This document shows, piece after piece, positions 22,804 through 63,978 of a stretch of 64,000 nt of DNA; position 1 is the first letter of the stretch; the number at the start of each line of letters is the position of its first letter. The notes under the pieces are model-generated. The model was not told the origin of the DNA. It was given only the letters and a program-made list of their open reading frames with translations, and did not search any database. Position numbers and translations under genes: made by a program. Source of the DNA: Penicillus capitatus (taxonomy: Eukaryota; Plantae; Chlorophyta); the NCBI GenBank assembly GCA_965649825.1, contig OZ287719.1:62001-126000 (forward strand). Direction: 5' to 3'.

Positions 22804-23235
22804 GTTCACGCGAACGCGAAACGTCTATGCGGCGCAGAGGCAAAGCGTTTAGCACGGACTGGAATGCGAGGCTTGAAACAAGGCACTGACAAAGACACGT
22901 GGTCGAATTTGTAGGCTGTCTGGACTGTCCTGCGAATGCACCGGACAGCATCCTTGCGTCTCCTCCACGCATTTTCGCGCAGCATGACTCGGATGACGAA
23001 ACCTCGAACGTCTTTCTCCACAGCACGGGATGAGGGCTGGGGAACGTTGATTCTCTGGCGAGTCGCTCTGTGTGACGCTGCACGGTGTTGTGAGAATTCG
23101 CTCGAAAGGGTAAAGGAATGCGCGTTCGCGGTAGGCTGTTCGTTTGTGAAACGTACAGATCGCAATTACAATCCTGTGATCCAGCGCGTCCATTTTAATG
23201 TTCCTTTTTTCTAAGATTATTCTCATCGTATTCCA

Positions 23236-26200: not shown

Positions 26201-26419
26201 TCTTCGATTATTTGTCGCCTGCTGAAAAACAGGCTCCTCTGTCAGTTTTTTTGGCAATGATACCTGGTGAATAAGAATCTTTCTACCGTCACTATCAAAA
26301 ACACAATCTTGTTCGCAATCTAAACGGAGGCCTAGCGTTTGTAAAGCTTCTAACCCCAAAATTGGCTTTGTCACCCCCTTGCATACTAAGAACGAGAGTT
26401 TTGTTTTCCTTGTCGCCAA
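23236..26419 (-). pseudogene. Family 1 copy A pol (protease C-half, dUTPase-like, RT, RNase H, integrase), disrupted
   Basis: RT RPTIDFRDIN/LPQG/RYFDD; RH LYTDW..NAIADVLSR; IN HKGH..CDVC, DFIGP, DNGAAF. Stops at 26123 and 25796; frameshifts near 24270 and 23760. Confidence 0.9.
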
Positions 26420-29327: not shown

Positions 29328-29361
29328 GTTGTGAGAATTCGCTCGAAAGGGTAAAGGAATG

Positions 29362-29608
29362 TGTCGCCGGTCGGCCGAGCAGAAAACAATACACAGCGGA
29401 AGACTCTTACATTAATCGGAGCAAGGTCTTGAGTGTTCAGAATGTGTCCTTATGTATGCGCGCGGTGACGCGACGTTCCTAGGCAGGTGAATCATCGTGC
29501 TGTCAAAACCACAGAAAAGGGCCCTTTGTCCCGTAGGACAAGACAGGCAGCGTTCCTTGGCACGGATAACCCCCGCAGAACAAGACAGTGTCACATCGCT
29601 CGGCGACA
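29362..29608 (-). mobile_element. Solo LTR (247 bp) related to the family 3 LTR
   Basis: Termini TGTCGCCG..CGGCGACA. Aligns by eye with 53272..53507 (CAGCGGAAG, GGCAGGTGAATCA, GTCACATCGCTCGGCGACA). Flanks GAATG/CTCGT are not a TSD. Confidence 0.8.
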
Positions 29609-30322
29609 CTCGTCGTCGTCGGCCAGGGCGAATTCCCGATCGAACACACACGGTTGCACAAGGAAAAGCTTACAAAACGTCATGAGCCCCAGGGCTTTTA
29701 TCCGGTCCACGCGATGGACAGGTGAGTCACCCACCTCTCAGCACCATAGAACGAGGACCCCTCATGGCCCCCGTCTCCCTTGACACGACTCCTGAGTACC
29801 CCTTTCAAGCCCGACCCCCTCCCCACCGAGGCAGTCCCATCGCTGCAGCGAGGCCATCACATCGCCAACTCCAAATCTTGGCGACATGTCCATCGATCCA
29901 TTCTCCTCTTCGTATTCTTTGCTCGTCGACTTCGCATAGGGCAGTCCATCGTGGAAATGCCCTCCGCTGGCCACCTGTCCATCTGCGTTCGTCCGTGCCA
30001 GGACGTAAAATCAAGATCAATAGCGACCATGAAGGCGCGTGGTTGAATCATCCAGTATGTGTCTGCGCTGTCATACAATTGTCGGTCACATCAAGATAGC
30101 AAGCAATCTCGTCGAATGGTTCTGTAGACGCGCACCACGCTTTGTTTTCTAGCCTTGCATGCCGACGCAACAGACATGACGTGGGGAGTAAGTATCAAGA
30201 CAGTAACGAATCTGATAGAAAGAAAAACCTCTATCGCCCAATCAGCGACCTGTCGGAGGATACTTTGGACGCGCCTTTTAGTGACAACTAAGTCAGAATC
30301 CAGGCTTTTATCGTGCGAAAGC

Positions 30323-30398
30323 GCCCTCGTGGTGTAATGGTTGGCGCACTTGAAGTTTTCTCAAGAGGCGTGCGTGGGTTCGAATCCCGCCGAGGCGC
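30323..30398 (+). pseudogene. tRNA-derived element (tRNA pseudogene or SINE head)
   Basis: A-box TGGTGTAATGG, B-box GGTTCGAATCCC, anticodon arm CTTGA-AGTTTTC-TCAAG. It lacks U33, the acceptor stem is imperfect, and there is a 4-nt duplication in the variable loop. Confidence 0.7.
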
Positions 30399-31099
30399 CC
30401 CGTGAGTCACTCGGGTGATAGTGACTGGCCGGAGGGTGAAGCGGCGACTCATCATGATCAAGAAAATCAGAAGATTGTGCAATTAAAAAGACGCGGGTCA
30501 AGTCCAGACCGGAGCATGCGGTTATACGTGAGGTGGACGACGAATCGTCGCAGACGCTGTGAGACATGTGAAGCGACGGATGGAAGCACGAGTCTTCTAA
30601 TTGAACGATTGAACGATGAATTGACAATGGGCGTCGGGTTGCTGATATGCTAATTAAGCGCATGCAACTGTAAAAATCCAAATCGAATCGAATCGTGCGA
30701 AAGCCATGGTGAGCCGAACTAACGCGCGTAGCGGAGACGAAACAAAACGGCAACACGCAAAGAATTGATAAAATTACAGTTCGGCCGTTTCCCCGGAAGC
30801 TCTCGCCGATCACTCATAACGATGAACAAAAGCACAAGGCGCGTCTGAGCCTCTTATTTCTTCGGTGTACCTTGACTCGTCTGGCGCAGAACGTCCCTCG
30901 TCTTCCGTCCTCGCGTTGCACGCAGGTCGCCTCGGAGTCTTCTCACGTCTCCTCGAGAGTCCATCCATCCCGTCCACTGCAGCCATCTGGTTCACGCGAA
31001 AAAAAGAAAAAAAGGCAAAAAGATAGAGAAAGATGAAGGTGAGTGGATGCAGCAACCGACGCAGTCTTTTGCGCCGGCAGCTTTAGGGCTAGGGTGACT

Positions 31100-31161
31100 G
31101 CTCAGTCAAGGTGACCGAACAGTTTCGACGGCGCCACCCGTCTCATCAGACCCCTTAAGAG
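31100..31161 (-). ncRNA. Type I hammerhead ribozyme (predicted cleavage GUC^A between 31113 and 31112)
   Basis: Minus strand: AAGGGGT-CTGATGA-GACGG(gtggcg)CCGTC-GAAA-CT(gttc)GGTC^ACCTT. Full core present; stems I, II and III can form. Confidence 0.75.
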
Positions 31162-31254
31162 TATTTGCCGATTTAGCGCTATCCAGTCCCGCCACGAGGA
31201 GGCACGGCTCGACGATGCGTTGGCAAACACACCGCCGTTGGGACCACAATTTTG

Positions 31255-31803
31255 GGTAATCACGAAATGAAACGAAATGAAATGCCATTCCTTGGGGTGG
31301 TAATCACGAAATGAAATGCCATTCCTTGGGGTGGTAATCACGAAATGAAATGCCATTCCTTGGGGTGGTAATCACGAAATGAAATGCCATTCCTTGGGGT
31401 GGTAATCACGAAATGAAATGCCATTCCTTGGGGTGGTAATCACGAAATGAAATGCCATTCCTTGGGGGGGTAATCACGAAATGAAATGCCATTCCTTGGG
31501 GGGGTAATCACGAAATGAAATGCCATTCCTTGGGGGGGTAATCACGAAATGAAATGCCATTCCTTGGTGGGGTAATCACGAAATGAAATGCCATTCCTTG
31601 GTGGGGTAATCACGAAATGAAATGCCATTCCTTGGTGGGGTAATCACGAAATGAAATGCCATTCCTTGGTGGGGTAATCACGAAATGAAATGCCATTCCT
31701 TGGTGGGGTAATCACGAAATGAAATGCCATTCCTTGGGGTGGTAATCACGAAATGAAATGCCATTTGGTGGGGTAATCACGAAAGTGCCTTGGGGTAATC
31801 ACG
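31255..31803. repeat. 34-bp minisatellite (13 full-length units plus degenerate flanking units)
   Basis: Unit TAATCACGAAATGAAATGCCATTCCTTGGGGTGG with an exact 34-bp period from 31301 to 31743. No spacers. Confidence 0.95.
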
Positions 31804-32370
31804 AGGATGTCCTTCCTTCCGGGATTCCTCAACCAGGTCGAAGGGACGGCCGCCTACAAGAGACGACCCTCACCCCGCCTTCGGGACTAACGGGTGGGCC
31901 CGACGCCGTAGAAGCCGCTCAACAGTCCGCGCCACAACCGTCGCACGATTGCCGCCATCGACGGCAGCGTCTCATGCGCTGTTGTATCATTCTTTCGACG
32001 GACAACCGAACGACGATTCGACGTAGTGGGACCGGAGCTGCGCAACTGTGGGGGAGTATCTCCCGGAAAGAAGGGCCATCCGAGGATGTCCCCCCGATCC
32101 GAGATTCCTCAACCAGGTCGAAGCAAAGGCCGCCTACAAGAGACGACCCTCACCCCGCCTTCGGGACTAACGGGTGGGCCCGACGCCGCAGAAGCCGCTC
32201 AACGGCCCCCGCCACAACCGCCGCACGATTGCCGCCGTTCTCGGCAGCGTCTCATGCGCTGTGGTAAGGTACTTCAATAGTGCAAAACTTCAATATGACG
32301 GAACAATCGAGGACGCGTTCGACGCATCCGGACTGGAGCTGCGCAACTACGGGGGAGTATCTCCCGGAAA
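31803..32370. repeat. Two diverged ~280-bp direct repeats
   Basis: Copies start at 31803 and 32082 (GAGGATGTCC...CAAGAGACGACCCTCACCCCGCCTTCGGGACTAACGGGTGGGCCCGACGCC...GGGGAGTATCTCCCGGAAAG). Confidence 0.9.
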
Positions 32371-34889: not shown

Positions 34890-37404
34890 TCGACTTGACA
34901 GTGAAACAGTCACGGCGTCAAAGATACCCGGATACCTTCCGATACCTTCTGATACCTTTATCCAATTCATGCCCGTCACGAACCCTTGCAACCATTCGAC
35001 TCACGGACACAACGTCTCTTCCGTTGCCGCCGGCAAACAAAACGTTCGGAACTTTGTCTCGAATGGGCGCTTTCCAGTCTCGTCGGCATCCCAAAACAAA
35101 CGGCACAAACCAGTCCCTTGGCGATCTGACCGTCCGTCCACACTTCCGTTCCCGCATTCCCTAGACCAATTCCCAGCGCCTCCGCACTAGACCTACCGCC
35201 GGATGCAAACCCCGTGGAGCGACATACCATACCGTCTAGTCTGCCACTCTCCCTTGTGGACACCAACGTCTTCCTCAAGCTGACGACGAAGCAAAGCTCC
35301 GTAGCGAAACCGACGCAAGAGATTCACGGACCACGGCTCTTGAGAAAAGAATCCACGCAGAACACCCGAAGCGTGCTTGCAGTGGAACGGCAATACAGGA
35401 AAGAAAAAACAACAAGCCTACGACACACACCGATAGCGGAAAGACGGCGCTGGCGCGGGAAAGAAAAAACCACGTTTCCTACGAAGACACACAAGAAAAG
35501 AAAAAACGCGCGTCGAGCCATGGCGATCGCAGAACTCAAGGTCAGCACGCCGCAGTCAACCGAGGAACGTGGCCCACGGCAATCCGCGTTCCCAAGCCGT
35601 CATCACCCCACGCTCTCCACTAATCGCACACCTAGGTCGTCGTGCTTTGGCCTCACCGCGTAGTCGCCATCCATATTCTCCCCTTTATCACTCATCCGAG
35701 TTACGCATCAGATCGCCAACTCATCCTCTTTTGCCGACCCTTGACATCTCTTCTCTCCTCGCCCGCCCATCTCGACAAAGCTCCGCCTTCCACGCGAGAA
35801 GCCCGATACAACCTCTAACGAATCCTAATCCGCATACCGGACCGCTGCATCGGTCACCTATCTTCTGGATCTCTTTCCAGAATCCCTAGATGACCCCTCC
35901 GCCTCACCGACGCCCTTCCGCTTTGCATCGGCCGCTTTCTTTATGTCTGACATCCGCTGTTCACGAGCCCGTGTGCTCCGTAACCCGTAGCGTCGCTTTG
36001 CCTCTCTTTCCCTTGATACCTCTTCATCGTAAGATGATTCCCAAGAACGACGTTTGGAACCGCGGCCCCTAGATACCGGCTCTTCCACTTCCATAACCGT
36101 GTCCCCGTCGTCGTCCACGTTCCCTTCTTCTCCGTCGACGACTGTCGGTATTCCTTGCACCACGTTCACAGGCGTCCCCTCGGCGCCCTCCTCGACGTCC
36201 GCCGGCGTCCCGTCGGCGGTTGACGCCATCGGTATGCCTTGCACGACGATCACGGGTGTCCCGTCGGCGATCTCCACGACGTCCGCCGGCGTCCCGTCGA
36301 CGACTGTCGGTATGCCTTGCACGACGATCACGGGTGTCCCGTCGGCGATCTCCACGACGTCCGCCGGTGTCCCGTCGACGATTGACACCACCGGTATGCC
36401 TTGCACGACGATCACGGGTGTCCCGTCGGCGATCTCCACGACGTCCGCCGGCGTCCCGTCGACGACTGTCGGTATTCCTTGCACCACGTTCACAGGCGTC
36501 CCATCGGCGATCTCCACGACGTCCGCCGGCGTCCCGTCGACGACTGTCGGTATTCCTTGCACCACGTTCACAGGCGTCCCATCGGCGATCTCCACGACGT
36601 CCGCCGGCGCCTCGCTGGTGACCGGCACAGCCAGGCTTATCAAGAAGCTCACGAAATTATGGGCCAAGTCCACGAAGTCCTCTGATGCACGGCGTTCGTC
36701 GGGCGCTGTGCTCATGAGGAAATCAACTGTTGAACTCAAGTATTCCACGAAACGCAGCGTTCTTAGGAATTCGTAGTCGTCGTTGGCGTCGGCGACCAAG
36801 TAGTTCGACACCGCAGCTTGCCATAAAAGGTTAGCATAGTCCGCCCAGGTGCGAAGTTGCACATCACTAGGGCCAGGTTCGTCCGCTCCTCCTGCTACAC
36901 GTCGCGGAGCCAGTTGCCGGCTGACGTGAAGGACCGCCAGAAATCTATCTGGGTCTGTCCCTTCATACGGTGTGTCGCCAAGATCTGGCTTGGCGATGTG
37001 ACTGCCCAGAGGGTCACATCGCTTAAAACGGAGAAAAACCCTGGGTCTGTGAACCTTTGTAAGCCTTTTGCGTTCTGCGTTACGTGCGTGTGTAAGCGAA
37101 ATCCATCCTGGATAACGACGAAGCGCAACCGCCTTCGCGTGCAGTTGTTCCTTACCCTCCTTTGTACCAAAACACGCCATATCTGTCGGCGCTAGCGTTC
37201 TTCAGACAAGCGGAACGTGGGAGCTCTGACGTGACCGAGTCCATAGCGCAGGACGGTACCCAAGTCGACGATCGACTGGTCCATCCTGTGGAGGCAGGAC
37301 CAACCGACGCAGAAGCCGACGAAGAAGCACCACGAAGGGAATTATCCCAAGAGCGACAAGTGGTTTCGGAGCGAGGCTACGGCGAAGTAGAAGGGGTAGA
37401 CAAG

Positions 37405-39222
37405 ATGCAGCAAAAAGCCTGGCTGTGTCTCTTTGCGTTGTTTTACCTTCTTGTCTCTGCGGCAATAATCGCGGGACACGCGGAGAATTCAACAGAGAAG
37501 GAAAGGTCGGAGAAGGAGCTCCAAGATGAGTTTAAGGAATCAGGGGCAACATTGGCTGACTTGTTACAAAGGATCAAAGCCTTAGAAAAGGAAGCGGCCG
37601 AGTTCAGGGCAGAAGCTCGGAGGGAGAGGGCCGCACGGATACAGCTGAATGAGGAGGTGCAAATACTTAGGAAGGAAAATGAGCGCCTTCGAGATCGGAT
37701 GGAAGCGGAGATTATTAACGAGGTGCTTGAGGAGGGGCAAAAATTACGTTTGGAGGCCACGAGGACATGGTGGGAGTGGCTGACGGGGACGGCTCCCCCG
37801 GGCGTGGAGGTGGAGAGAACGACCACGATCGAGGGTTGCCAAGATTTGAAGTGTTGCTTTGGAATGTGGTGGACGACCGTGGGAGAACTATTCCATCAAA
37901 CAACGGATCTTATTTATCGATTCGTGTGGGATCCATATGGCACTGGAGGCCACTGGGCATCGGGTCTGTTTAGCGCCGGCTTCTGGGGACCGGTGCTCGG
38001 AATAACGATCCTAGTGGTGGTGGTGAATCTCCTACTGCTGGCTGTCTTCCGAGCGGCTGATATATGGAAGGGAATGAAGGGGCTGGCCAGTAGGTTGGGA
38101 GGGCTGCCCATGTTTAAGCTCGTGGGTATGGCCTTCTCGAAGCTGCGAAGGGGAGAGGGGCCAGAGGGGACCTCCCCTGAACTCCAGGAGATGCGAAGGA
38201 CCGTAGAAAAGCTTCAGAAGACCGTGGAGACGAGTCAGCGGAAGGGAAAGGAGCAACGGGAGATGAGGGAGCTCCGTGGGCAGGTGGAGAACCTCATGGC
38301 CAAGTGCGAGCAACAGGCGCCTCCAGGAGAGGATGTGCAGACGAAGACCGTGAGAGAGATGCAGGCATTTTTCCAGCAGCAACTCGATCAGCTACGAAGG
38401 GAGTTCATACATACGGGGAAGCAACCAGGACCTGCACCGATCCCGGTGGATATGTCTCCCCGTCGGAGGCAGAATCCTGGTTCAATGCCACCAGGGGGGA
38501 GGCAACGCTACTGTGAGCGCTGCAAGAAATGGCATCCGGGACTTGAGTGCTGGGATTGCACCAAGTGCAGAACGTGTGGTGCAACAGGAATGTGCGAACA
38601 CCGGGCAAAGATCGTGGAGAACAACCGAAGACGATCCCCTACTCCCAGGCCGGAGAGGACGAGAGCTGTGGCGGTATGTGAGCGGGAGGAGTCTGAAGCG
38701 ATGTGGGATTGGGACGCGAGGTTAGTGGAGGAGGCATCGCAAACGGGATCTTCAATCTCCTTCTCGACGAAAGGGGAGGGAAGTGGAGAACCGGGCACAC
38801 AAGAGTCGGTCGTTGCGGTGGTGGACAAAGAGGCTAAGGGATACCGTCTGCGAGGACACTTGGCTGTGGGAGGAGGGGTAGCTCCTTGCACGTTCCTTAT
38901 CGACACTGGCTCGGAAGTGAATTTGCTGAGTGAGAAGACGTGCACGCGCCTAGGAGTGGGTATTCAGTCGGCAGGACCTGACAAGCCAAACTTGGCAGGG
39001 GTGTCCGGAGAGCGGTTAGAGGTGACGGGGCAGGCGATCTTAGAGACTCGGTTTGGTCAAGAGGAGGGGAAGGCGATTCGTTATTGGGTCGCGAAGAACG
39101 TAAGAGACATAATTGGGATTCCTGGAATAGGGCAGCTGGGGATTTCATTGACGAACCCGGGTCACATGGCAGTGTTTCCCTCGGGGCAGAAACTTTTTTG
39201 TCAGGTGGTGCAAAAAAACTAA
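37405..39222 (+). CDS. Family 2 Gag-protease: signal peptide, coiled-coil ectodomain, TM, coiled coil, Zn fingers, aspartyl protease
   Basis: MQQKAWLCLFALFYLLVSAAIIAGHA; TM FWGPVLGITILVVVVNLLLLAVF; CERCKKWHPGLEC; FLIDTGSEVNLL; IIGIPGI. Confidence 0.88.
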   Translation: MQQKAWLCLFALFYLLVSAAIIAGHAENSTEKERSEKELQDEFKESGATLADLLQRIKALEKEAAEFRAEARRERAARIQLNEEVQILRKENERLRDRMEAEIINEVLEEGQKLRLEATRTWWEWLTGTAPPGVEVERTTTIEGCQDLKCCFGMWWTTVGELFHQTTDLIYRFVWDPYGTGGHWASGLFSAGFWGPVLGITILVVVVNLLLLAVFRAADIWKGMKGLASRLGGLPMFKLVGMAFSKLRRGEGPEGTSPELQEMRRTVEKLQKTVETSQRKGKEQREMRELRGQVENLMAKCEQQAPPGEDVQTKTVREMQAFFQQQLDQLRREFIHTGKQPGPAPIPVDMSPRRRQNPGSMPPGGRQRYCERCKKWHPGLECWDCTKCRTCGATGMCEHRAKIVENNRRRSPTPRPERTRAVAVCEREESEAMWDWDARLVEEASQTGSSISFSTKGEGSGEPGTQESVVAVVDKEAKGYRLRGHLAVGGGVAPCTFLIDTGSEVNLLSEKTCTRLGVGIQSAGPDKPNLAGVSGERLEVTGQAILETRFGQEEGKAIRYWVAKNVRDIIGIPGIGQLGISLTNPGHMAVFPSGQKLFCQVVQKN

Positions 39223-39248
39223 AGGGCTCTCCCGCGCAGACGGGAGAG
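39213..39248 (+). promoter_or_regulatory. -1 programmed ribosomal frameshift signal
   Basis: A_AAA_AAC heptamer (39213..39219) directly before TAA, 7-nt spacer, 8-bp stem CTCTCCCG/CGGGAGAG with a 6-nt loop. Confidence 0.88.
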
Positions 39249-42194
39249 GGGGGTGGTACTTTGAAAAGGGATAAAAGAAAACAAAAAGAGGGGGAAATCA
39301 GCACGCTCTGTTGTAAGAGCGTTTCATTAAAGCAACTGTGGGTATATGAGCCGAAGTGGCGCATTTTATGCAGGGGGAACGTGCTGCAACTGCCATTGGG
39401 CAAGACCACATACATCCCACCCAGGGAATCAATGCGGGTTTGTTTGCCCTGGGAGGTCAGGGGCGCAGATTTGACCGGTTTTTTCTCTCTACTGCATCGT
39501 AAGGAGGTATCGGTATCAAGCCAGTTTAGCGCAAAGTCGGGACGGATCCATGTGTTGTTGCTTAATTTCGGATCGGAGGTGGCTGTCATAGCCGCCAAAA
39601 CGTTTGTCCTGGGTGTGGGGTCGCAAGGGTCGTTCTTTCATGTGTGCACGGCCGATGGGCGAGAACATCAGTTGTCTAATGGTATGGGGGTTGAGTGTGG
39701 GGCGAAGGGATGGGCGGTTGCGAGCGTTAGCTCGGAGCCAAAATTTTTTGCCCAGTTCCCTCAGTTGTTTTGTGAAGATACGTGTCGGATTCCGGAGCAC
39801 ATGCAAAGGTTTCGGGTCCGGAAGGACGACATTTCTTGGGTGGGGGACATGATCTATCGGGGGAAGTGTGCGGTCAATGTGGAAAATCTGGTCCCGGCGC
39901 GGGCCATAGATGAGACGGTTGAATCGATGCTGCGTGATGGCTATGTGGAGGAGGTGGGGGACAGTTCGTCGCTCATGTTGCATCCGTTGATCTTCCTCCC
40001 GAAGCCAGACGGGCGTACGCGCTTAGTCATCGATTTACGACGTATCAATGGTCATACACGACACACGAGGGGGGGACTACCAGCGATACATACTGTGTTT
40101 CGCCAAGTGCCGACCACATGGCGTTTTTTTTGTAAAATTGATATTAAGAATGGTTACCATAGGGTACCAGTGGAACGTTCATTGGGGGATTTATTTGCAT
40201 TTGGTATACGCCGCCGTTTCTTTCGATACAAGGTATTGCCTCAGGGATGGGCGGCTAGTCCGCATATTTTCCATGCTGTCATGATGGAAATATGCTCTGG
40301 CCATGAGGCAATACATTATATTGATGACATAATACTGGGGGCGTCGACCCTAAAGGAATTGACTGCGCGGGTTTCTGCTCTGTTAGCCACCCTACAGAAA
40401 TACGGATTGCAGATACAGCAGAAGAAGTTTCTTTTTGGAAAGGAATCTGTAGAGTTCTTGGGTTTTGAGCTCCGGAGTGGGGGGCGTGTGAGTGCTGAAA
40501 GCTATTTACAGAAGCGAAGGGAGGCACTGGAAGGTCGAATAGAAACAAAAAGAGACCTGCAGAGTCTGCTGGGGACATTGAACGTCGCTCGGCACTTCGT
40601 ACCAGGGCTCAGCCAAAAGACGGCTGGGTTGCAGAAGTTGTTGCTGGCTATGGCGAGCAGTAGCTTGGGGACGGAAGAAAAGGAGCAGGCTCACGAGTTG
40701 GCGAAGAAGGCCTGGGGGGAGGTGTTGGAATCCTGTGTAACAGTGCAGATGGCGATGCCAGAGAAGGCCAGATTTGAGTTGTACACGGATTGGTCAACGG
40801 AGGCGATGGGATACGTCCTTTTTGCTGAAGGGGAGGACGGGCGTCATATCACAGACATCAACTCCACAAGGGCAGTCGAGCGGACAGCCGTGAGCAGCTT
40901 CCTGGGGGAGCTGCGGGGAATTGTGTGGGCACTGAAGAAGACGCGACATATCGTCTGGACCTCGGCAATCAAGGTCTGCTGTGACAATCAAGGCACAGTA
41001 GCTCGCTTGCAGAAGGGGGATGTCATGGGGGATGATGTTCGATGTTCTCGACTCATGGGATGGCTGTGGGGAAACTTCCCCCAAGTACAGTTTGAGTATG
41101 TACCTGGCGCAATCAACCAAGTGGCAGATTACCTGAGTCGGAGAAAAGGCCAGCAGAAGGAGGGGAAGGTGGTAGGAGCAGTTATGCTTCAGCAGCGGCC
41201 TCTCGTTGACGTGGTAAGGAGCCGTCTGGAAAAGGCACATCAGGGTCACTGGCACGCAGAAAGGACGTGGCAACATCTGAAACGGGATGGCCCGGTTTGG
41301 CCGGGAGCAAGGAAGGAGGTGTTCCAGTATGTGGAGCAGTGCCCCAATTGCCAACATTTTCGTGGCTTAGAGCACCGGGAACCATGGACGGGGATGGAGA
41401 TAACTCACCCAAACGATGTTGTTTTCGGAGATTTTCTGGGGCCTATTACTTTGAGTCGGGGGCGAGGAAAACGAGTCCTTCTGGTGTTGGTCGACGGTTT
41501 CAGTCGCATCACGCACTTACACGTGGCTAAGACTCCCACGGAAAGAACGGTCCTGCGAGGATTGAAGCGATGGGAACAAGCTTTATCATGGAAACATGGA
41601 CATATTCGTATGTTCATGGCAGATAGAGGAGCGGCATTCATCGGCGGAGGGGTTCGAGCATTCTGTGAGGAGCATGGGATCAAGCAACGGTGGTCGCCAA
41701 GTCATGCACCTTGGTGCAATGGTGCAGCAGAGCGACAGGTGGGAAACGTGAAGACAAGATTGGCCAAGATACTCTGGAAGTCTGCCGAGGACATCTCTAT
41801 CCATACGTTGGAGGAGATTTTGAACCAAGGGATTTGCGAGACCACGGGTTTCACACCCATGGAATTGTGCTGGGGAAGACGACGTGACGGCAGCTTGATG
41901 ACGGACATGGAGTGGGAGCAGGCCATGCACCTCGCTCAACAGAAAAGAGCGGCTGGGCGACAGAGGGACAGGGAAGCATACCTTCGAAAATTTTCGAGCA
42001 AGCCGCCGCTACAGACAGGACAATGGGTTCTGGCGTATGAACCTCATAGAAAGCGCCATGCACTCCATTCGCCGTGGACAGGTCCTCACCTAACTGCGGA
42101 GCCGCGGGGGTCGAGATTATGGATGGTGTGGAAAAATGGAAGTTCTCGAAGAGTGGGACCATTTCATGCAGAACATTTGCGGTTATATTGCTAG
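39213..42194 (+). CDS. Family 2 Pol (-1 frame): dUTPase-like, RT, RNase H, integrase
   Basis: RLVIDLRRIN, LPQGW, HYIDD; LYTDWS..NQVADYLSR; HQGH..CPNC, DFLGP, DRGAAF, ERQVG; C-terminal GPF/Y-like module. No chromodomain. Confidence 0.93.
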   Translation, partial: KKLKGSPAQTGEGGGTLKRDKRKQKEGEISTLCCKSVSLKQLWVYEPKWRILCRGNVLQLPLGKTTYIPPRESMRVCLPWEVRGADLTGFFSLLHRKEVSVSSQFSAKSGRIHVLLLNFGSEVAVIAAKTFVLGVGSQGSFFHVCTADGREHQLSNGMGVECGAKGWAVASVSSEPKFFAQFPQLFCEDTCRIPEHMQRFRVRKDDISWVGDMIYRGKCAVNVENLVPARAIDETVESMLRDGYVEEVGDSSSLMLHPLIFLPKPDGRTRLVIDLRRINGHTRHTRGGLPAIHTVFRQVPTTWRFFCKIDIKNGYHRVPVERSLGDLFAFGIRRRFFRYKVLPQGWAASPHIFHAVMMEICSGHEAIHYIDDIILGASTLKELTARVSALLATLQKYGLQIQQKKFLFGKESVEFLGFELRSGGRVSAESYLQKRREALEGRIETKRDLQSLLGTLNVARHFVPGLSQKTAGLQKLLLAMASSSLGTEEKEQAHELAKKAWGEVLESCVTVQMAMPEKARFELYTDWSTEAMGYVLFAEGEDGRHITDINSTRAVERTAVSSFLGELRGIVWALKKTRHIVWTSAIKVCCDNQGTVARLQKGDVMGDDVRCSRLMGWLWGNFPQVQFEYVPGAINQVADYLSRRKGQQKEGKVVGAVMLQQRPLVDVVRSRLEKAHQGHWHAERTWQHLKRDGPVWPGARKEVFQYVEQCPNCQHFRGLEHREPWTGMEITHPNDVVFGDFLGPITLSRGRGKRVLLVLVDGFSRITHLHVAKTPTERTVLRGLKRWEQALSWKHGHIRMFMADRGAAFIGGGVRAFCEEHGIKQRWSPSHAPWCNGAAERQVGNVKTRLAKILWKSAEDISIHTLEEILNQGICETTGFTPMELCWGRRRDGSLMTDMEWEQAMHLAQQKRAAGRQRDREAYLRKFSSKPPLQTGQWVLAYEPHRKRHALHSPWTGPHLTAEPRGSRLWMVWKNGSSRRVGPFHAEHLRLYC

Positions 42195-42889
42195 GGTGAT
42201 CGTCAGAGTTGGCGGGAAGCGTGGTGTCGCCAAGATCTGGCTTGGCGATGTGACTGCCCAGAGGGTCACATCGCTTAAAACGGAGAAAAACCCTGGGTCT
42301 GTGAACCTTTGTAAGCCTTTTGCGTTCTGCGTTACGTGCGTGTGTAAGCGAAATCCATCCTGGATAACGACGAAGCGCAACCGCCTTCGCGTGCAGTTGT
42401 TCCTTACCCTCCTTTGTACCAAAACACGCCATATCTGTCGGCGCTAGCGTTCTTCAGACAAGCGGAACGTGGGAGCTCTGACGTGACCGAGTCCATAGCG
42501 CAGGACGGTACCCAAGTCGACGATCGACTGGTCCATCCTGTGGAGGCAGGACCAACCGACGCAGAAGCCGACGAAGAAGCACCACGAAGGGAATTATCCC
42601 AAGAGCGACACGGTGATCCTATGTCCTCCTCGCCGGGCACGTATGCAGTAAACGTGTCAAAAAGAGCCGACTGAAGGGCGTTGAAGAACACGCGGTACCC
42701 CTCACGTTCGACCAGTTGGTTGTCCAACGCTTGCAGAACGCTATGAATAAGCGACGACACGGACGAACTCATCGTTGTTTTTTTTGCAGAAAAATCCGAG
42801 AACCAAACGCCAATATGGCTGAGGGCAGTTTCGGCAAAAAGACGCGAAACGGCAAACGGCAAATACGCGGAATAATTGTACGGCGGTAC

Positions 42890-43713: not shown

Positions 43714-46531
43714 TCATCGGTCCCGCGCTCGAGAAGCGACAACTTGATGCTTTTGATCTCCAAGGCAGCGACGCGGCGAAGATGAACGGTCCTTCCGGAT
43801 GCAGGAGGATATGTATGACGACTCTATGCGGATGCCGCAGATCGGGATCACCGTCCGACAGCAAGCAAAGCTGTTACATCGACAGCAAAGACGAACATCG
43901 AACGGTCTGACACAGAGAGAAAGACAGGTAGCTAGCTTCGTGTGATAGACAAAAAAGCAAAACAGTTTCAAGAGAGAAACACTGGTACGACATGACGGTA
44001 AAAAAACAGGTAAGTGGTGGGCGATCTGTCTCTGAACCTCCAGATCTGGTCCATTCCGAAAGATGACGTGTGTTTGGTGAATCGGAACCGGTCTTTGCAC
44101 TGGGCTCCATGTCCTCTTCATCGAGACGCGTTCTCTTCTTTTTCGCGCCGGCGTCGACGAGAATCTAAACGCAAGAGCCGTATGTGATCGAGTACAGACA
44201 GCGAGCGCATGATGTCACCTCGGCAAGGATCGGGTTGCCATGACTGGCTGCAGCGGAGATCGGCGTGCGCGATTCCTCGTCCTTTGAATCAACGTCGGCC
44301 CCGGCATCGACGAGCTCCTACGATGGACACGCCCGTCTCGATCGTTTTATGCGTGTGCTCTCTCGCCAGCGTGATTTCGGCATGTCCATAGAGTGCCGCT
44401 TGATGAAGCGCGGTCCTCTTTGCCAGAGTTATCGCCTCGACGTCGGCATCGACCGTCAGGAAATACTGCAACCGCTCGTCACCGCAGGCGCGTTGTCACT
44501 TGATGCAATGACGCACTTGGACCATACGCAGATTCCCCTTCGACACGGCATCGTAGAGCGGCGTCCTTCCGACAGTATCACCGCCGTTGGTATTCGCTCC
44601 GCCTTTGTACAAAACCTGCAACGATGTGCTTGCGCCGCCATTCTTTGCTTTGAGACGAGGAGGCACCTATGCGGTTTCGACGTCCCCATCGAGCGCCGCC
44701 ACATGAAGCGACGTCTGATCGCGCCGGTCGGCCCTCAAAGACACATAGATGCCAAACCACATCGCTTTACCGCTGAAGACGGACGTACATCTCGATTTCG
44801 TCAAGCCACGGTTTCAGGATCTTGGCGAATGTCGCAGGAGAAACGATGGTCCTGTCTGTGTGAGACTCCAGCCGTCTGCTCTATGTGAGGAAGTTTGCGA
44901 TTCGTCGCATCGTCGGCGGAGAACGTGGTCGAAAGCGGCGCGATCGAATCATCCCCCAACTCGCATTTTGTTGCATACTTCAAGCATCTGTGTTCCTTCG
45001 GCTAAAAGCCGTAGAATCTCATCTTCCCCCTTTACCCAGCTAGTGACAAAAGAATCGGGATCCATGCGTTCCATCGAGACCTTATGCAAAACAGTCTCGG
45101 CATTGTCTTTCGGTAGGACATCATTGCCGAAAAGGAAAAAACAGCGCAAAAAACGCCTCGGCTAGCACAGGAGAACGGTGCCCGACATTAAAAGAAGTGT
45201 CCGTCGGGCTTCATCCGAGACACGATCTCGTCGGGAATAGTGCAGAACAGACCCACAATGCATAGGCAATCGTACGCAACCCTCCCATCGACGTCTTCCG
45301 CAGTGGTGGATGCTCCTTTGTCTAGCAGCATCTGTAGAGCATCGAGCGAGTTCTGCGCAGTGGACAAACAGAGTGACGCACCTCAATGATCTCTGGTATT
45401 CCGATTGCTGCGGCAACATGAAGAGGTCTCATTCCGCTAGGCATCTCTGTTTTTTCGACGTCGGAGCCAGCTTCAAGCAGAGCCTGCACAAACAGATTCT
45501 TGTCTGAGAAGACCTCCGACACATGAGATGGATGTACTTTTACTACTTCGACGTTCACAGTGCATATTGTGGCAATGAGTACTGTCATTCCAATATCATC
45601 ATTAACTGCGTCGATATCTGCGCCTTTATTGATTAGATACTACACAAGAATCCCACTAAGACAGAGCGTTCATGTGGCTCGAGACGCACTTTCATGACTT
45701 CAGCAAATTCACCCTGCTTGGAGGGTTCTAGGTGGTCCGAAATTACCATCTGCGCCGCTAAGAGAAGTGCATTATTTCCTTTGGTGTCAACTGCTTTGAC
45801 ATCTGCGCCTTTACTGATTAGATACTACAGAAGAGTCTCACGACGACAGAACGTGCATGTGGCTCGAGACGTACTTTCACCATTTCCGTATTTCTTGTAG
45901 CAGACGCATAGTGAAGCGGAGTACGATGAAAGAAATCGGTTGCTTCGATGTTTGCTCCTCTGTCGATTAGATACTACAGAAGAATCCCGTGACTATGAAA
46001 CGTCTGTACAGTCCGTGACACACTTTCGCGACCTCTGTTCTTCTCGCAAACAGCGCCCAATGGAATGCATTCCATCCACCGCGGTCGATCTCCTCGATGT
46101 CTGCTCCGTCGTCCAGCAGAGCCTGTTTACGAGTGGTCCTTCTCTGAGAACCTTGTTACGCTGAAAAGACACACCTCCACTTCTTTCACGTCTCCATCCA
46201 TCGCCGCCTGGTGAAGAGGAGGCGTTTCCTGATTGTCATGTACGTGGAGCTTTGCGCTGCGCTCGAGCGGCAACTACGTTGTCAGTCTCAGCTGGCGCAC
46301 ACAGCCTAGGGATCATGGTTGTACCTGATGAAGATCGTCCTTCTCTTGACCAGCGACGCGTGAGAGGATGTTTCCGCCGTCCACGCCCGCGAACAACTGT
46401 GCCCCTTTCAGACAACAGCAGATGCGTTTTGACGACGTCGCGTGATGCTAACCGGTGATACCACGGCTGCCGGATGCCACACGGGAAACGAGCAGAAGGC
46501 AGAGCCACACGTACAGCACACTGCACCTCAT
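43714..46531 (-). CDS. Signal-peptide + ankyrin-repeat protein, paralog A3; multi-exon, 3' end uncertain
   Basis: ATG 46531 MRCSVLYVWLCLLLVSRVASGSRGIT; ankyrin exons including SGMRPLHVAAAIG and TKRTALHQAALYGHAEIT. Confidence 0.62.
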
Positions 46532-49149
46532 GTTTACGCGACCTCGAAACGTCTATGCGGCGTAAAGGCAAAGCGTTTAGCACGGACTGGAATGCGAGGC
46601 TTGAAACAAGACACTGACAAAGACGCGTGGTCGAATTTGTAGGCTGCCTTGACGATCCTGCGAATGTACCGGACATCATCCGTGCGTCTCCTCCACGCAT
46701 TTTCGCGCAGCATGCCTCGGCATGACATAACCTCAAACGTCTTTCTCCACAGCACGGGATGAGGGATAGGGAACGTTGATTCTCTGGCGAGTCGCTCAGC
46801 CCGATGCTGCACGGTCCTTGCTCCGCAGAGCACGTAGTGTTTCGATTTCCGCCTGCGACATGGGCATCGTTTTCCAGGACGCCGAAGATCTTCACGTTTT
46901 CGAAATTGCTGCTGTCCACTATCTCAAGAGGAGACGGATCCTCCGTGGTCGCCCTGATTAACAAACCCTCGTTACTCGAATATACATCACATCAGATGGG
47001 TGTGGCGGCAGATGTACAATTGGAATGGCGAATCTGCTGTCCGTTGAGGACAGCTTCTCGTGTCACACAGTTCGTGTGCAACACTGCGTCGCTCTGAAGA
47101 CCGACAGCTTCATGGAGAATGATGCAGTTGCGATGTGTTAGGTGCCATGACCCTATGCAGCAACAGATGCAGTGTCGATGAAGCATCCATCCTTCATCGA
47201 CAGTTCCAACTGCTGTCCGTTAACAAGCCAAGTCTGACAGGCGAAGACGATACGGGTCATGAATGCATCGTCGCTGCTGTTCAAAGTTCTCTGCGTGCTC
47301 TAGTATCATCTTTCCTATCTGGGAACAAACGCGGCCATCAGACTGTTTGTTCCCTGTTATGCGATGGAGACAAGGAGTATCTCGGCCTGCTTTACCAATA
47401 CACGCTGCACCAGTAGCAGACAGACAGACAGACAGACCTTCTTTGTCGATCTCTTGTGCATCAAATGCCTCGAGAAGAGGCTCGTTTCCTGCAGCACCTG
47501 TCAAATCATGCCGTTCCGTGTTGGCGGTCTTCGGGAAGCTAAACGGTCCGACGAATCAGTTCATTAAGTGTCCATCGATCCAATCTCCTCTTCGTGTTCT
47601 TTGCGCGTCGACTTTGCATAGGGCATTCCATCGTGGAAATGCACTTCGCTGACCACCTATCCATCTGCATCGTTTCGCAATTCTTCTCAGAGGCGAAGGA
47701 GTTGTTCGAAACTCAAAAAGAGAAGCCATTCAACGGGTAGACACGACGAGAGGGAAGGCAGATCTCTCAATTCGTCCGCATTTGATGCCTGCCTTGTACA
47801 TAGCGAGAACCAGTCACTGAAAGAACACTGTGCAATTCATAGACGAACAAAGGATGCTAGGGAAACGTCCTGACTTCTGTATAAGGAGTCGCCCTTCGTA
47901 TTCTCCCATTCTGCTCAAACAAGGAATCCTTGAGGTCAAAGGCGACGGAAGAGACATGCTCTGCTGTTTCTTGATGACACGAGACAGATCCTTTCTCCTC
48001 TCTATGGAAGTATGTGGCGACAGTCATTTCACGGACTTGAGAATCGAAGATGTGACGGGGATGCAACAGTGGCAGTGCTCTAGTATTACATTAACCGTTT
48101 TAACATCTATTCAGCCGTCCTGTCCATGCAGTCTTTTCAGCGAATGCTGACTGTCCTATCGAGACGTCGTCTTCCATCGTCGACATCTCTCCACATTAGA
48201 CAGACTTTGCCCGCAAAGCGACCGCTGCCAAATCCAACACACCTGCAGGAAAATGTCACCATCGCGTCATTAGGCACAGAACACCACTCACCGTCGTGAC
48301 CAACACCGTCTTGCATTTTGCTAGGATGCCTGCACAGTATCCTTCGTTGTCCGTCAATGCACACAGGAGCACCGTGATGACAAGGATGAAGTGAAACGTC
48401 TTTTGGGCGTTCATGTCGACGACGCTGAGGCTGCCAGCGACAGGAAGGACGATAATGTATGGACTGGCGCTGTTCGCTATCACAGCACCGCGAGTGGAAT
48501 GTTTCGCCCGACGATTTGAACAGACTGCCGAAAAGTGTCGCCCAAACGCACAGGCAGCTGCGAAAACCGAATGAGATAATCGGCTGCTGCATGCGCCATG
48601 AAATACCCTCGCCGCCGCGATTGTCTATCTACGACGTTCGCGATGCGCAGCTGTCCCACGTGGCCGTCACATCAAGTCGCCTCCCGCAACTCGACGCATC
48701 CACGACTCCTCACTTTTCTTCGCCCTTGTCCTCTGCGTCGGCTACGATGATTGTCCTGCGTGCTGCCACGCGAGTTCGCACATATTTGGCTACACCCGTT
48801 TACAACGTGGCTGCGTGAGGGATCTTTGTTATCGCGTTACTGATCGACGACGCCACCAAGACGCGTCGAGATGCCGTTCGTGTCGACTGCTCGTCGCATA
48901 CGCGCGCACTAACTGGACCATTAGACGATCTGAACCAGGAATAGGCGGTCGTTCGTTAGACGGAGGCAGGACTTCACGCAGTCCGTCTCCTTGTTCTCTT
49001 CTCATGATGGAACAAGCGTGTATCCAACAGACAAACAAAAACAGAAAACCCATCCGCCAAGGCGTCCTATTTCAGGCGCCGGCTGCATTCAGGAGAGGAG
49101 GTACTCGAGTTCAGCCCTGGTCGTTTCAGAACAGGGCGGATCGGCGTCG

Positions 49150-63916: not shown

Positions 63917-63978
63917 GCTCAGTCAAGGTGACCGAACAGTTTCGACGGCGCCACCCGTCTCATCAGACCCCTTAAGAG
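63917..63978 (-). ncRNA. Type I hammerhead ribozyme (duplicate of 31100..31161)
   Basis: Same core and stems. Confidence 0.75.

Follow-up and report, generated by a model that had tools for sequence, protein, structure and literature searches.

The Gag protein of LTR retrotransposons is taken to be soluble and cytosolic, and Gag is known to reach membranes through a lipid modification, through a matrix domain, or with the help of an Env or small membrane protein that is encoded separately. The question raised by this locus is why the Gag-protease ORF of an intact element should open with a signal-like hydrophobic segment, a predicted luminal domain and a Trp-rich membrane anchor, and what such a module might do. 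Two families of elements with an N-terminal module of this kind are present in the window, that is, the whole stretch of 64,000 nucleotides that was analysed. The explanation favoured here, given a probability of roughly 0.55, is that the in-frame module serves as a membrane-targeting and assembly platform of Gag, that it forms an exchangeable cassette, and that family 2 additionally makes a longer isoform from a CTG. No description of such a membrane-anchored Gag for Ty3/gypsy-like elements was found in the literature.

The family-2 element extends from 36973 to 42610 on the forward strand, on which all of its features lie, and it opens with an intact Gag-protease ORF. Its 5' LTR (36973-37358) and 3' LTR (42225-42610) are 386 bp long with TG..CA ends and are 100% identical, and the target-site duplication CGGTG is found at 36968-36972 on the left and at 42611-42615 on the right. 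The PBS-like 16-mer TGGTTTCGGAGCGAGG (37361-37376) is common to family 1 and all relatives examined; the 15-16-mer beginning with TGG directly after the LTR is the same in both families and all relatives, and no cognate tRNA was identified for this TGG-starting 16-mer. The Gag-protease ORF (37405-39222; 605 aa) lies wholly within the LTR element, and its first ATG, at 37405, is 29 nt past the PBS-like 16-mer. Behind the N-terminal module come a predicted cytosolic part with a coiled coil and Pro-rich sequence, without a recognised capsid family (38176-38511), a nucleocapsid-like part made up of a CCHC zinc knuckle and, behind it, another Cys/His cluster (38512-38601), and an aspartic protease domain (38872-39114) with its DTG at 38896-38916. 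The heptamer A AAA AAC, placed in the gag phase at 39213-39219 and abutting the gag-PR stop codon, is likely the site of a -1 frameshift into pol; the C-terminal residues of gag-PR at this site are identical in all relatives. The pol ORF in the -1 frame (39084-42194) encodes RT, RNase H and integrase, and a purine-rich PPT-like tract (42214-42224) precedes the 3' LTR. The element is intact, and the identical LTRs, the target duplication and the presence of an identical Pol on another contig show that it is young.

Both families can be assigned to the Ty3/gypsy-type LTR retrotransposons. The domain order according to Pfam is protease, RT, RNase H and integrase, and the best PDB matches of Pol are Ty3 Gag-Pol 7q5b (E 1.6e-30) and Ty3 RT 4ol8, with the RTs of foamy viruses, caulimoviruses and gamma-retroviruses ranking behind Ty3. 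Also shared with Ty3/gypsy (Metaviridae-type) elements are the TG..CA LTRs with a 4-5-bp target duplication, the PBS right after the 5' LTR, the purine tract before the 3' LTR, the CCHC knuckle in Gag, the same order of Pol domains and the reading of Pol through the -1 frame. By contrast, the N-terminus of Gag differs here in consisting of a signal-like segment, a predicted luminal domain and a membrane anchor; further differences are a start codon straddling the LTR/PBS junction and a capsid family that is not recognised. No capsid or Retrotrans_gag family was found in either 'Gag', even at E up to 10, and only CCHC knuckles and coiled coils were seen. Since no capsid domain was detected, the label 'Gag' is given on position, CCHC knuckle and protease only. 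In known Ty3/gypsy elements such as the errantiviruses and the plant Athila/Tat elements, Env-like genes are separate ORFs 3' of pol (PMC13524379).

The module of family 2 begins with a hydrophobic segment at aa 5-24 (37417-37476), either a signal peptide or a signal-anchor. An N-x-T sequon lies directly behind it (37486-37494) and is conserved across six family-2 members, being found in the same place in L005, L006, L009, L010 and L001. A predicted luminal domain of helical/heptad character follows (aa 26-118; 37480-37758), representing the variable 'type A' distal ectodomain, and then the first Trp cluster, TRTWWEW (aa 119-125; 37759-37779), of which W125 is invariant in alignment A4. The cysteine triplet CQDLKCC, with C-4-CC spacing (aa 145-151; 37837-37857), is invariant in all six sequences of alignments A4 and A6. 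The Trp-rich juxtamembrane helix and loop (aa 152-191; 37858-37977) are highly conserved, with 9% Trp vs 2.5% overall, and lead into the predicted transmembrane anchor (aa 192-217; 37978-38055; Kyte-Doolittle (KD) peak 3.0) and a downstream amphipathic helix (aa 226-247; 38080-38145). Conservation within the entire family-2 Gag is highest in the anchor and the helix behind it. This order of parts had been proposed from the letters of the window by a sequence-only reading, and it is borne out by the coordinates, the KD values and the AlphaFold2 model; the transmembrane segment that was then placed at 37981-38049 coincides with the anchor found here.

The two hydrophobic peaks of family 2 lie far beyond chance. 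In 19-residue windows, KD reaches 2.44 at aa 5-23 and 3.00 at aa 197-215, and among 5000 shuffles of the protein the N-terminal value was reached by 1, the internal value by 0, and both by 0. The 15 residues ahead of the anchor core include 0 basic ones and the 15 behind it include 4, and the positive-inside rule is satisfied at the anchor in 7/7 members tabulated, so that Gag is predicted to stay in the cytosol. AlphaFold2 gives a single long helix at aa 50-118 (pLDDT about 90); taken whole, the models of both families are of low confidence, with pLDDT 46 for family 1 and 61 for family 2 and pTM between 0.25 and 0.40 (0.25 in family 2). The first segment of family 2 is a 20-residue apolar run, which resembles a membrane span more than a signal that is cleaved off, and because of this and of a possible translated LTR-encoded extension upstream, it is uncertain whether this family has a simple type I topology. 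L007, a distant member with 24% identity, has a signal-like segment that is short and canonical and ends in small residues. The type I membrane Gag that had been put forward is thus upheld as to the positive-inside rule and a predicted cytosolic Gag, and left uncertain as to a simple type I form in family 2.

The stretch of LTR, PBS and leader from 37096 to 37404 is open in the gag frame without an in-frame ATG, and it may encode an N-terminal extension of Gag. Within the open LTR stretch lie a CTG in strong initiation context (37108-37110) and a Pro/Tyr-rich motif (about 37147-37170). LTRs of the family-2 type have 88-145 codons open in frame, and their conserved CTG has A at -3 and G at +4; in family 1 only 4-23 codons are open. 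The pN/pS of the extension is 0.39-0.54 in frame vs about 1.0 in the other two frames, a coding signature that is clear in the relatives and weak to not seen for the window copy. Given the open LTR upstream of the ATG, the coding signature and the conserved CTG, the 'signal peptide' may be the signal-anchor of an extended isoform, and family 2 probably has a second, longer isoform that starts at this CTG. In that isoform, the first segment would act as signal-anchor and the protein would cross the membrane twice as a hairpin, its two ends being cytosolic.

The start codon is also peculiar. In L002, L003, L005, L006 and the family-1 copies of the window, the ATG is formed by the last LTR base and the first two PBS bases, which implies that the primer-binding site encodes the start of the signal sequence. 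The purine at -3 and the G at +4 of this junction ATG speak against leaky scanning. The same ATG-plus-PBS string is found, as a string match, in L001 and L007-L010, and all elements checked have a strong initiation context around the first ATG.

Family 1 lies on the reverse strand. The Gag-protease ORF of copy 1 (26295-29327; 1010 aa) is intact, and at its start lie the PBS (29311-29326) and a 35-bp remnant of the 5' LTR (29327-29361), the remainder of the LTR being missing. The signal-like N-terminus (aa 1-25; 29253-29327), whose first residues MVSERG are encoded by the PBS, is present in 3/3 members. It is followed by a Clp/Hsp100-type AAA+-like domain with four conserved cysteines (aa 26-240; 28608-29252), an acidic linker (28308-28607), a moderately hydrophobic stretch rich in Gly, Ala and Ser (aa 343-386; 28170-28301; KD 1.0-1.4), a CxC motif with a Trp-rich juxtamembrane region (aa 464-524; 27756-27938), a candidate transmembrane anchor (aa 524-548; 27684-27758) and an Arg-rich hydrophobic/amphipathic segment (27606-27683). 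The Trp-rich hydrophobic region spans aa 467-574, and the four cysteines and CxC are kept in the family at 31% identity. The CCHC knuckle (26724-26765) and the aspartic protease (DTG at 26550-26570) occupy 26388-26765. The pol of copy 1 (23257-26020) has two frameshifts and up to two in-frame stops compared with the intact Pol of L002, and the PPT (23244-23258) and 158-bp 3' LTR (23086-23243) close the element at 23086-23258. The second copy (55912-62186) belongs to a segmental duplicate of 98.7% identity. One frameshift interrupts the gag-PR of this copy (59124-62152), and two frameshifts and one stop its pol.

The anchor of family 1 is weaker than that of family 2, and marginal. Its KD of 1.98 (1.64 in P0004) was reached by 315/5000 shuffles (6%), and the segment contains Lys. 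If the second hydrophobic segment after this anchor spans the membrane, Gag would come to lie in the lumen. The order of parts earlier described for family 1 is confirmed for the signal-like start, the alpha/beta domain, the acidic linker and the Trp-rich region, and holds less firmly for the anchor. Likenesses that had been seen by eye between the membrane modules of the two families dissolve on comparison: BLASTP gives E = 1.2, hhalign gives a probability of 1% and, with deeper profiles, 0.2%, and the Smith-Waterman score was reached by 217/1000 shuffles. A homologous anchor common to both families is not detectable by these tests, and what the two have in common is confined to the order of their parts and their richness in Trp.

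The predicted luminal domain of family 1 had been called torsin-like. Torsins sit behind a signal sequence, and the family-1 domain likewise follows a signal-like sequence. The likeness can be kept at the level of the Clp/Hsp100 AAA+ clade only. The profile of the domain matches Skd3 and ClpB (E 0.002-1), with Skd3 at E 0.002 over the Walker-B to sensor-1 region, and the best 50 Foldseek matches are all Clp/Hsp100 (E 1e-5 to 6e-4, from a model of pLDDT 46). Torsin is absent from the PDB sequence matches at E up to 10 and from the best 50 Foldseek matches listed, and neither Pfam Torsin (E up to 10) nor Pfam AAA matches the domain; torsins as its nearest relatives are not supported, the matches being ClpB, ClpC and Skd3. 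When aligned to Skd3, the Walker-B Asp is kept, the next Glu is Ala, the sensor-1 Asn is Gly, and Walker-A is unaligned. The replacement of the Glu and the Asn suggests that the AAA+ domain is catalytically degenerate and probably not an ATPase. Compared with ClpB NBD2, ClpC and human CLPB/Skd3, to which profile and Foldseek matches tie it, the domain differs in sitting in a retrotransposon polyprotein and in having its catalytic residues replaced.

The modules are not peculiar to the window. Intact, recently inserted relatives (L002, L005, L006, L008-L010) keep them, so the fusion to Gag is retained in intact members, and L002, L005 and L006 of these have 100%-identical LTRs. TG..CA ends and a target duplication, as in family 2, are seen in L002, L003, L005 and L006. 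The relatives were all taken from three or four assemblies, whose hosts may be closely related. The dN/dS is 0.12-0.19 over the family-2 modules (window vs L001) and 0.17-0.29 over the family-1 modules (window vs L003), with about 0.67 in the family-1 signal and anchor windows of about 25 codons each; the Gag and protease parts give 0.07-0.26. These values indicate that the N-terminal modules are under purifying selection, and the view that they are part of the elements, and not host exons, is supported. When L010 is compared with L006, the module (aa 1-200) is 63-100% identical, the rest of Gag 10-30% and Pol 33-36%, and identity matrices and sliding windows reveal two different distal ectodomains on the same anchor. 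The module can be regarded as an exchangeable cassette moving between distant lineages, with a replaceable distal luminal part. The swappable module of the sequence-only reading is thereby sustained, since lineages with a Pol identity of only about 33% have exchanged the N-terminal module as a whole.

According to the favoured explanation, Gag is predicted to be inserted in the membrane. The nascent polyprotein would be brought to the ER by its first hydrophobic segment, and the next domain would be translocated into the lumen, in family 2 the coiled coil with the C-4-CC triplet and in family 1 the catalytically dead Clp/Hsp100-like AAA+ domain. The anchor would stop the transfer, so that coiled coil, CCHC knuckle, protease and frameshifted Pol would be tethered on the cytosolic face. 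The module would then be a built-in platform for membrane targeting and assembly, in the role played elsewhere by a matrix domain or a separate membrane protein, and it may make up for the absent recognisable capsid domain. The protease could later cut the module from the nucleocapsid and the enzymes.

A different explanation, which appears rather unlikely, is that a minimal envelope-like or fusogenic glycoprotein heads the polyprotein of a retrovirus-like agent that has no separate env gene; after cleavage by the protease, the module would stay in the membrane wrapping the particle or at the cell surface and mediate fusion or the passage from cell to cell. In family 2, helices and motifs follow the order described for gamma-type (class I) retroviral TM subunits, which comprise a hydrophobic N-terminus, a long heptad helix, a loop with CXnCC where the chain turns back, a shorter helix, an aromatic-rich pre-anchor and an anchor (PMC9967133). 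In family 1 a large head and a linker are followed by a hydrophobic stretch rich in Gly and Ala, by helices, CxC and an anchor, and the distal ectodomain is fast-evolving and swapped, as receptor-facing parts tend to be. However, sequence searches of Pfam and PDB (E up to 10) gave generic coiled coils only and no viral glycoprotein, and a BFVD fold search for viral fusion proteins gave none either (best E 1.7). The ISD plus CX6CC signature is not matched: the cysteine spacing in family 2 is 4 where 6 is typical. The ectodomain of family 2 has only about 170 residues with no domain upstream of the heptad region, and it has neither a surface subunit with a CXXC partner nor a polybasic, furin-type cleavage site before a fusion peptide, the position of which is taken by the targeting signal; the model is without confident tertiary structure (pTM 0.25). 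In family 1 the head domain is present, and the sequence ahead of the hydrophobic stretch showed neither CXXC nor a polybasic site. The module is also placed at the N-terminus of Gag, not in a 3' env gene, and the host looks unicellular, so the gain from intercellular transfer is not obvious. The class I fusion likeness suggested by the sequence-only reading therefore consists in the order of parts and the C-4-CC spacing only and is not supported by Pfam, PDB or BFVD. A second precedent is the sORF2 of the Drosophila MDG1 group, a FAST-like 5' membrane protein of env-less Ty3/gypsy elements that supports cell-to-cell spread; it is a separate ORF of about 70 aa with an ectodomain, one span and a basic and amphipathic cytosolic tail (PMC11952523). 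The position upstream of the Gag body and the basic amphipathic stretch after the span are similar here, but the module of 215-590 aa is fused in frame to Gag and has far larger ectodomains and an N-terminal signal-like segment, so a separate small ORF of the sORF2/FAST type (about 70-200 aa) does not fit. That a protist Ty3/gypsy-like clade encodes an envelope-like glycoprotein first, fused to the Gag N-terminus as an exchangeable cassette, is a tentative idea of low probability.

It is likewise doubtful that the membrane form is a minor, accessory isoform with a regulatory or host-interaction role, the assembling Gag arising from downstream initiation or cleavage and the fusion being an inexpensive means of producing one more protein from unspliced RNA. 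A precedent is MLV glycoGag (gPr80gag), a Gag isoform that starts at a CUG upstream, goes into the secretory pathway by way of a hydrophobic segment in its N-terminal extension, is inserted in the membrane and has an accessory role (PMC12530543), and the in-frame selected extension with a conserved CTG in family-2 LTRs implies that alternative initiation is already present in the leader. Met codons occur right after the anchor in most family-2 members, and the gene caller placed the start of P0001 just past the anchor. Against this, the Met codons behind the anchor are not kept in every member (P0007 and P0008 differ), the strong context of the first ATG is universal among the elements checked, and the high conservation of anchor and post-anchor helix fits a structural role in every molecule. 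The body of glycoGag is luminal or extracellular and glycosylated (type II), whereas a second anchor predicts a cytosolic Gag here; the module is also part of the ATG-initiated main product, and sequence similarity is absent. A type II topology of the glycoGag kind, with the Gag body in the lumen, has the second strong span and the basic residues behind it against it. Less probable still is that the hydrophobic segments are oligomerisation or peripheral lipid-binding parts of a cytosolic Gag, with the 'ectodomain' in the cytosol too. The weak anchor of family 1 would agree with this, as would the usually cytosolic or organellar location of Clp/Hsp100-type AAA+ domains, but the family-2 segments reach KD 2.4-3.0 over 19 residues, values jointly attained by 0/5000 shuffles. 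The N-terminal segment, the positive-inside flanks and the conserved sequon and cysteines are what is expected of a secretory-pathway protein, and the start of L007 is textbook signal-like. An artefact, in which the N-terminal part is a host exon, a chance ORF extension or debris of a chimeric insertion, is scarcely credible. The family-1 copies of the window are indeed damaged and inside a segmental duplication, but the family-2 ORF lies between identical LTRs just behind its PBS, the architecture recurs in independent insertions on other contigs with their own target duplications and different flanks, and dN/dS is well below 1.

If Gag is integral to the membrane and bears a luminal domain of some size, as the favoured explanation has it, the expected assembly site of such elements would change, and so would the expected look of the particle, the capsid domain being undetectable. 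Extra genes would be gained through the exchange of cassettes at the 5' end, and not through their capture downstream of pol. Should the module prove envelope-like, one unspliced RNA would yield a membrane-inserted polyprotein giving both surface protein and particle core; this would represent an env-first route to a retrovirus-like life style, independent of 3' env capture, and an independent origin of retrovirus-like architecture in protists, to which the CUG-initiated cytosolic extension would add a further layer. The start codon at the LTR/PBS junction and the coding LTR with its conserved CTG are oddities of these elements, as is a dead Clp-type AAA+ domain apparently put into the secretory pathway by a transposon.

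The family-2 element at 36973-42610 is a complete LTR element with two LTRs of 386 bp each, which are 100% identical and end in TG..CA, and the 5-bp target duplication CGGTG is found on both sides of it. Its first gene is the Gag-protease (gag-PR) ORF at 37405-39222, encoding 605 aa, with an aspartic protease at aa 490-570 in Pfam. The pol ORF in the -1 frame (39084-42194) encodes RT, RNase H, and integrase (Pfam). The heptamer A AAA AAC at 39213-39219, in the gag phase directly 5' of the gag-PR stop, is likely a programmed -1 frameshift site, judging from its sequence and position, and the end residues of gag-PR are the same in all family-2 relatives. The top solved-structure match of the family-2 Pol was Ty3 Gag-Pol (E 1.6e-30), with foamy-virus, caulimovirus, and gamma-retroviral enzymes ranking below it, and the backbone belongs to the Ty3/gypsy kind. 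An identical Pol is carried by another public contig. The element of the window is young, intact, and of Ty3/gypsy type. Its 5' LTR overlaps the 5' end of an ORF of 440 aa on the minus strand (35858-37180), in which 162-bp tandem repeats at 36132-36617 encode an acidic Val/Pro/Thr-rich repeat; the element may have been inserted into or beside this gene.

Ahead of the Gag parts, the family-2 protein carries a module whose description and coordinates in the sequence-only reading proved correct. The Kyte-Doolittle (KD) means over 19 residues peak at 2.44 (aa 5-23) and 3.00 (aa 197-215). Between these peaks lie an N-x-T sequon (aa 28-30), a long helix (aa 50-118, predicted with pLDDT about 90), a first Trp cluster (aa 119-125) followed by a Pro-rich loop, the CQDLKCC motif (aa 145-151), and a second helix (aa 148-175) followed by a Gly/Trp-rich stretch. 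Hydrophobic residues occupy 62% of the a/d positions of the long helix, as against 33% elsewhere. No Lys or Arg occurs in the 15 residues before the anchor core, and 4 occur in the 15 after it. The anchor is followed by an amphipathic helix and a coiled coil; next come a CCHC knuckle of canonical form, a further Cys/His cluster, and the protease.

Relatives were found in the ENA assemblies ERZ25074695 and ERZ26696514, in the genome of the window, and in one marine JGI sample set. An exhaustive HMMER search with family-2 aa 100-262, the source of the related proteins P0006-P0010, matched five Gag-protease proteins, four of them at 52-61% identity and the fifth at 31%. A word-index protein search returned a single, partial family-2 match, and no relatives appeared in JGI metagenomes scanned with two family-2 alignments or in IMG/VR scanned with both families. 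The contigs of the family-2 relatives, some of them reached through Pol relatives, hold complete elements. The loci L005 and L006 have 100%-identical LTRs and target duplications of their own, and gag-PR and pol are full-length in L008, L009, and L010. L001 is a degraded copy with one stop and one frameshift in gag-PR, and L007 is a distant degraded member (24% identical, one in-frame stop in 293 codons translated), whose signal-like segment is short and ends in small residues. All family-2 relatives retain the first hydrophobic segment and, further on, the Trp-rich helix and the anchor with its basic stretch behind it; the cysteine triplet is invariant, and six members have a sequon right behind the first hydrophobic segment. 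Intact members lacking the fusion, which had been named beforehand as evidence against it, were not encountered; intact relatives carry the module.

Between family 2 of the window and L001, dN/dS was 0.11 over the anchor, 0.12 over both the Cys/Trp region and the Gag body, 0.19 over the post-anchor helix, and 0.07 over nucleocapsid plus protease. For family 1 compared with the locus L003, the luminal and membrane parts gave 0.17-0.29 and Gag plus protease 0.13-0.26; the signal and anchor windows gave about 0.67, in short windows of about 25 codons. An origin of the module as a host exon or a chance ORF was rejected on the basis of the identical LTRs, the elements' own target duplications, and the dN/dS evidence.

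The module does not always follow the rest of its element. When L010 (2765-3400) was compared with L006 (6316-6950), the module (aa 1-200) was 63-100% identical in 30-residue windows; beyond it, the rest of Gag-PR was only 10-30% and Pol 33-36% identical. This contrast between the sequences points to recombinational transfer of a cassette between lineages. Similarly, the distal ectodomain of L009 is the long coiled-coil type of L005 (70-90% identity), while its Pol is closest to that of L006 (69%). A different distal ectodomain, short and Tyr-rich, is found on the same Cys/Trp/anchor base in L006, L008, L010, and the related protein P0008. Together, the L010/L006 and L009/L005 patterns indicate that the module and, within it, the distal luminal part have been exchanged between lineages, and the earlier proposal of a swappable module is thus supported in substance.

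Family 1 is represented by a minus-strand gag-PR ORF at 29327-26295 (1010 aa). Its product begins with a signal-like segment, an alpha/beta domain of 215 residues, an acidic linker, and a moderately hydrophobic stretch rich in Gly, Ala, and Ser. Helices, a CxC, and a Trp-rich region lead up to a candidate anchor at aa 524-548 with a KD of 1.98; behind it lie a hydrophobic segment rich in Arg and then a coiled coil, the CCHC knuckle, and the protease. The topology is less certain in this family because the Arg-rich hydrophobic segment comes after the anchor. The related protein P0004, from a locus (L002) with 100%-identical LTRs, is collinear with family 1 over the N-terminal 600 residues at about 30% identity, and four cysteines and the CxC are conserved between them. 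Both family-1 copies in the window are damaged, having lost most of the 5' LTR and bearing two frameshifts and one or two stops in pol; the second copy has one further frameshift in gag-PR. They are segmental duplicates rather than independent insertions, being 98.7% identical over 8.9 kb with flanks included (22248-31183 and 55074-64000, the latter reaching the end of the window). The remaining 5' LTR is a 35-bp remnant that adjoins a mosaic of other LTR fragments (29362-29886). In P0005 (L004 9001-10548), a family-1 derivative, the signal-like start and AAA+-like domain are fused straight to integrase through an internal deletion.

The family-1 head domain had been called torsin-like. Its profile matches human CLPB/Skd3 over the Walker-B to sensor-1 region (E 0.002), and the best 50 fold matches of its model (pLDDT 46) are only ClpC, ClpB, Skd3, and ClpA; neither the catalytic Glu nor the sensor-1 Asn is retained. 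It is a Clp/Hsp100-type AAA+ domain. The description therefore holds loosely, as a Clp-type AAA+ domain behind a signal sequence, but torsin was absent from the profile matches and from the best 50 fold matches, and neither Torsin nor AAA was found in Pfam. No capsid family was detected by Pfam in the Gag bodies of either family. The alignment of the two families' membrane modules, made by eye, was no better than chance: the anchors gave negative results in BLASTP, in hhalign, whether the profiles were shallow or deeper, and in Smith-Waterman scoring against shuffles. They were rejected as demonstrated homologues, and what remains is analogy in how the parts are ordered. Both families share the PBS, the ATG at the junction, the MVSER start, and this order, and they may have inherited the arrangement from a common ancestor, but the anchors do not demonstrate such ancestry.

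In L002 (9046), L003 (8366), L005 (6340), L006 (6316), and both family-1 copies of the window (29325-29327 and 62150-62152, minus strand), the gag ATG takes its A from the very end of the 5' LTR and its T and G from the start of the PBS. The same ATG-plus-PBS string is present in L001 (7260), L007 (7713), L008 (2564), L009 (2486), and L010 (2765), whose LTR ends are unmapped. With the ATG placed across the LTR/PBS junction, the signal-like segment has its first residues (MVSER...) specified by the PBS. A purine at -3 and G at +4 give this ATG a strong context. In the family-2 copy of the window, the PBS-like 16-mer (37361-37376) lies just 3' of the 5' LTR, and the junction is without an ATG; the first ATG, at 37405 with A at -3, stands 29 nt beyond the 16-mer and 45 nt downstream of the expected site. 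The PBS showed no match to a tRNA-Leu gene (817-898) or to two weak tRNA-like sequences in the duplicated segment (30323-30397, compared directly, and 63148-63218).

In all family-2-type elements, the gag frame stays open through the 88-145 codons that precede gag within the LTR (37096-37404 in the window, L005 5977-6339, L006 5992-6315, and equivalents in L009, L010, and L001), with no in-frame ATG except in L010; in family 1, the upstream open codons number only 4-23. Between elements, pN/pS in this frame is 0.39-0.54, compared with 0.92-1.06 in the other two frames, although the coding signature is weak in the window's own copy. A CTG with A at -3 and G at +4 stands at the head of the stretch in all 6 elements. 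These features suggest an additional, longer Gag isoform in family 2 that would be initiated at this CTG; the 20-residue hydrophobic segment would then act as a signal-anchor, with the same topology downstream. A Pro/Tyr-rich motif is conserved in the stretch (VVPYPPLY in the window), which we take, from composition alone, to recall the short late-budding motifs of retroviral Gag.

It can be seen that the module is in-frame, conserved, selected, and exchangeable, and that its features match those of a secretory-pathway membrane protein. We favor, at a probability of roughly 0.55, a built-in platform for membrane targeting and assembly. The polyprotein would be targeted co-translationally to the ER; the domain with the conserved cysteines, and in family 2 the conserved sequon, would be luminal; the anchor would act as stop-transfer, and Gag-nucleocapsid-protease(-Pol) would stay cytosolic and membrane-tethered. 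An envelope-like or fusogenic role of the module after cleavage by the protease is unlikely. The loose resemblance to class I fusion proteins proposed for family 2 (family definition of the gamma-type TM from PMC9967133) goes no further than the order of parts and a CXnCC with n = 4, and no viral glycoprotein matched family 2 by sequence or fold. Pfam and PDB sequence searches with both membrane modules and the family-2 ectodomain gave generic coiled-coil noise only. The structure models used here are of low confidence, and a BFVD fold search with the family-2 model, which returned no match, is a weak negative, the model being without tertiary confidence.

Equally improbable is the module-bearing form as an accessory isoform beside a separately made Gag. 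A comparable arrangement is the glycoGag of MLV, a CUG-initiated, membrane-inserted Gag isoform with its Gag body luminal (PMC12530543). The absence of any true membrane insertion is more doubtful still: among 5000 shuffles of the family-2 protein, the 2.44 peak was reached once and the 3.00 peak never. The family-1 anchor is weaker, its KD value being reached by 6% of shuffles.

Along with glycoGag, the closest functional analogues of the module are sORF2 of Drosophila MDG1-group elements, which is encoded 5' of gag as a small membrane protein in its own right and supports transfer from cell to cell (PMC11952523), and the errantivirus env genes 3' of pol (PMC13524379). None of the three is an in-frame N-terminal fusion of signal, ectodomain, and anchor to Gag, and our literature search found no report of an LTR-retrotransposon Gag bearing a signal or anchor. 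A distant element (L011 46-1794 of JGI 3300000977, marine; also L012 and L013), with Pol 27-30% identical to both families, has at its Gag start about 110 hydrophobic Trp/Tyr-rich residues, which include a single candidate span with a run of Lys behind it; a large ectodomain is absent. Association of the Gag N-terminus with membranes may extend more widely across this part of the Ty3/gypsy tree.

Several other repeats were observed in the window. A 1.8-kb element on the minus strand (53272-55073) has LTRs of 236 bp with 99.6% identity and the initial part of the PBS found in both families. Its one ORF, Gag-like and about 370-400 aa long, encodes a coiled coil and a CCHC; membrane module and pol are absent, and the element is probably non-autonomous. 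It is inserted into another repeat, and the start of its LTR is similar to the L005 one (74% over 126 nt). About 20 copies of a 34-bp unit form a tandem array at 31170-31883; in the centre of the array they are 95-100% identical. A further repeat family (44145-49799, 21032-23086, and 52006-53271) has terminal direct repeats of about 595 bp, 91% identical and 5.06 kb apart; the RT of the studied families was not found in it, and fragments 90-97% related to it flank both family-1 copies. Uninterrupted ORFs at 5564-6679, 13412-14926, 12039-12692, and 8137-8832 encode MIP-T3/IFT54, an eIF2B-family subunit, an AMP-binding enzyme, and a helicase, respectively, and Rpb1 (1656 aa) is likewise uninterrupted in L002 (258-5228). 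The single-exon genes for IFT54/MIP-T3, eIF2B, and Rpb1 indicate that the host is an intron-poor, flagellated eukaryote.
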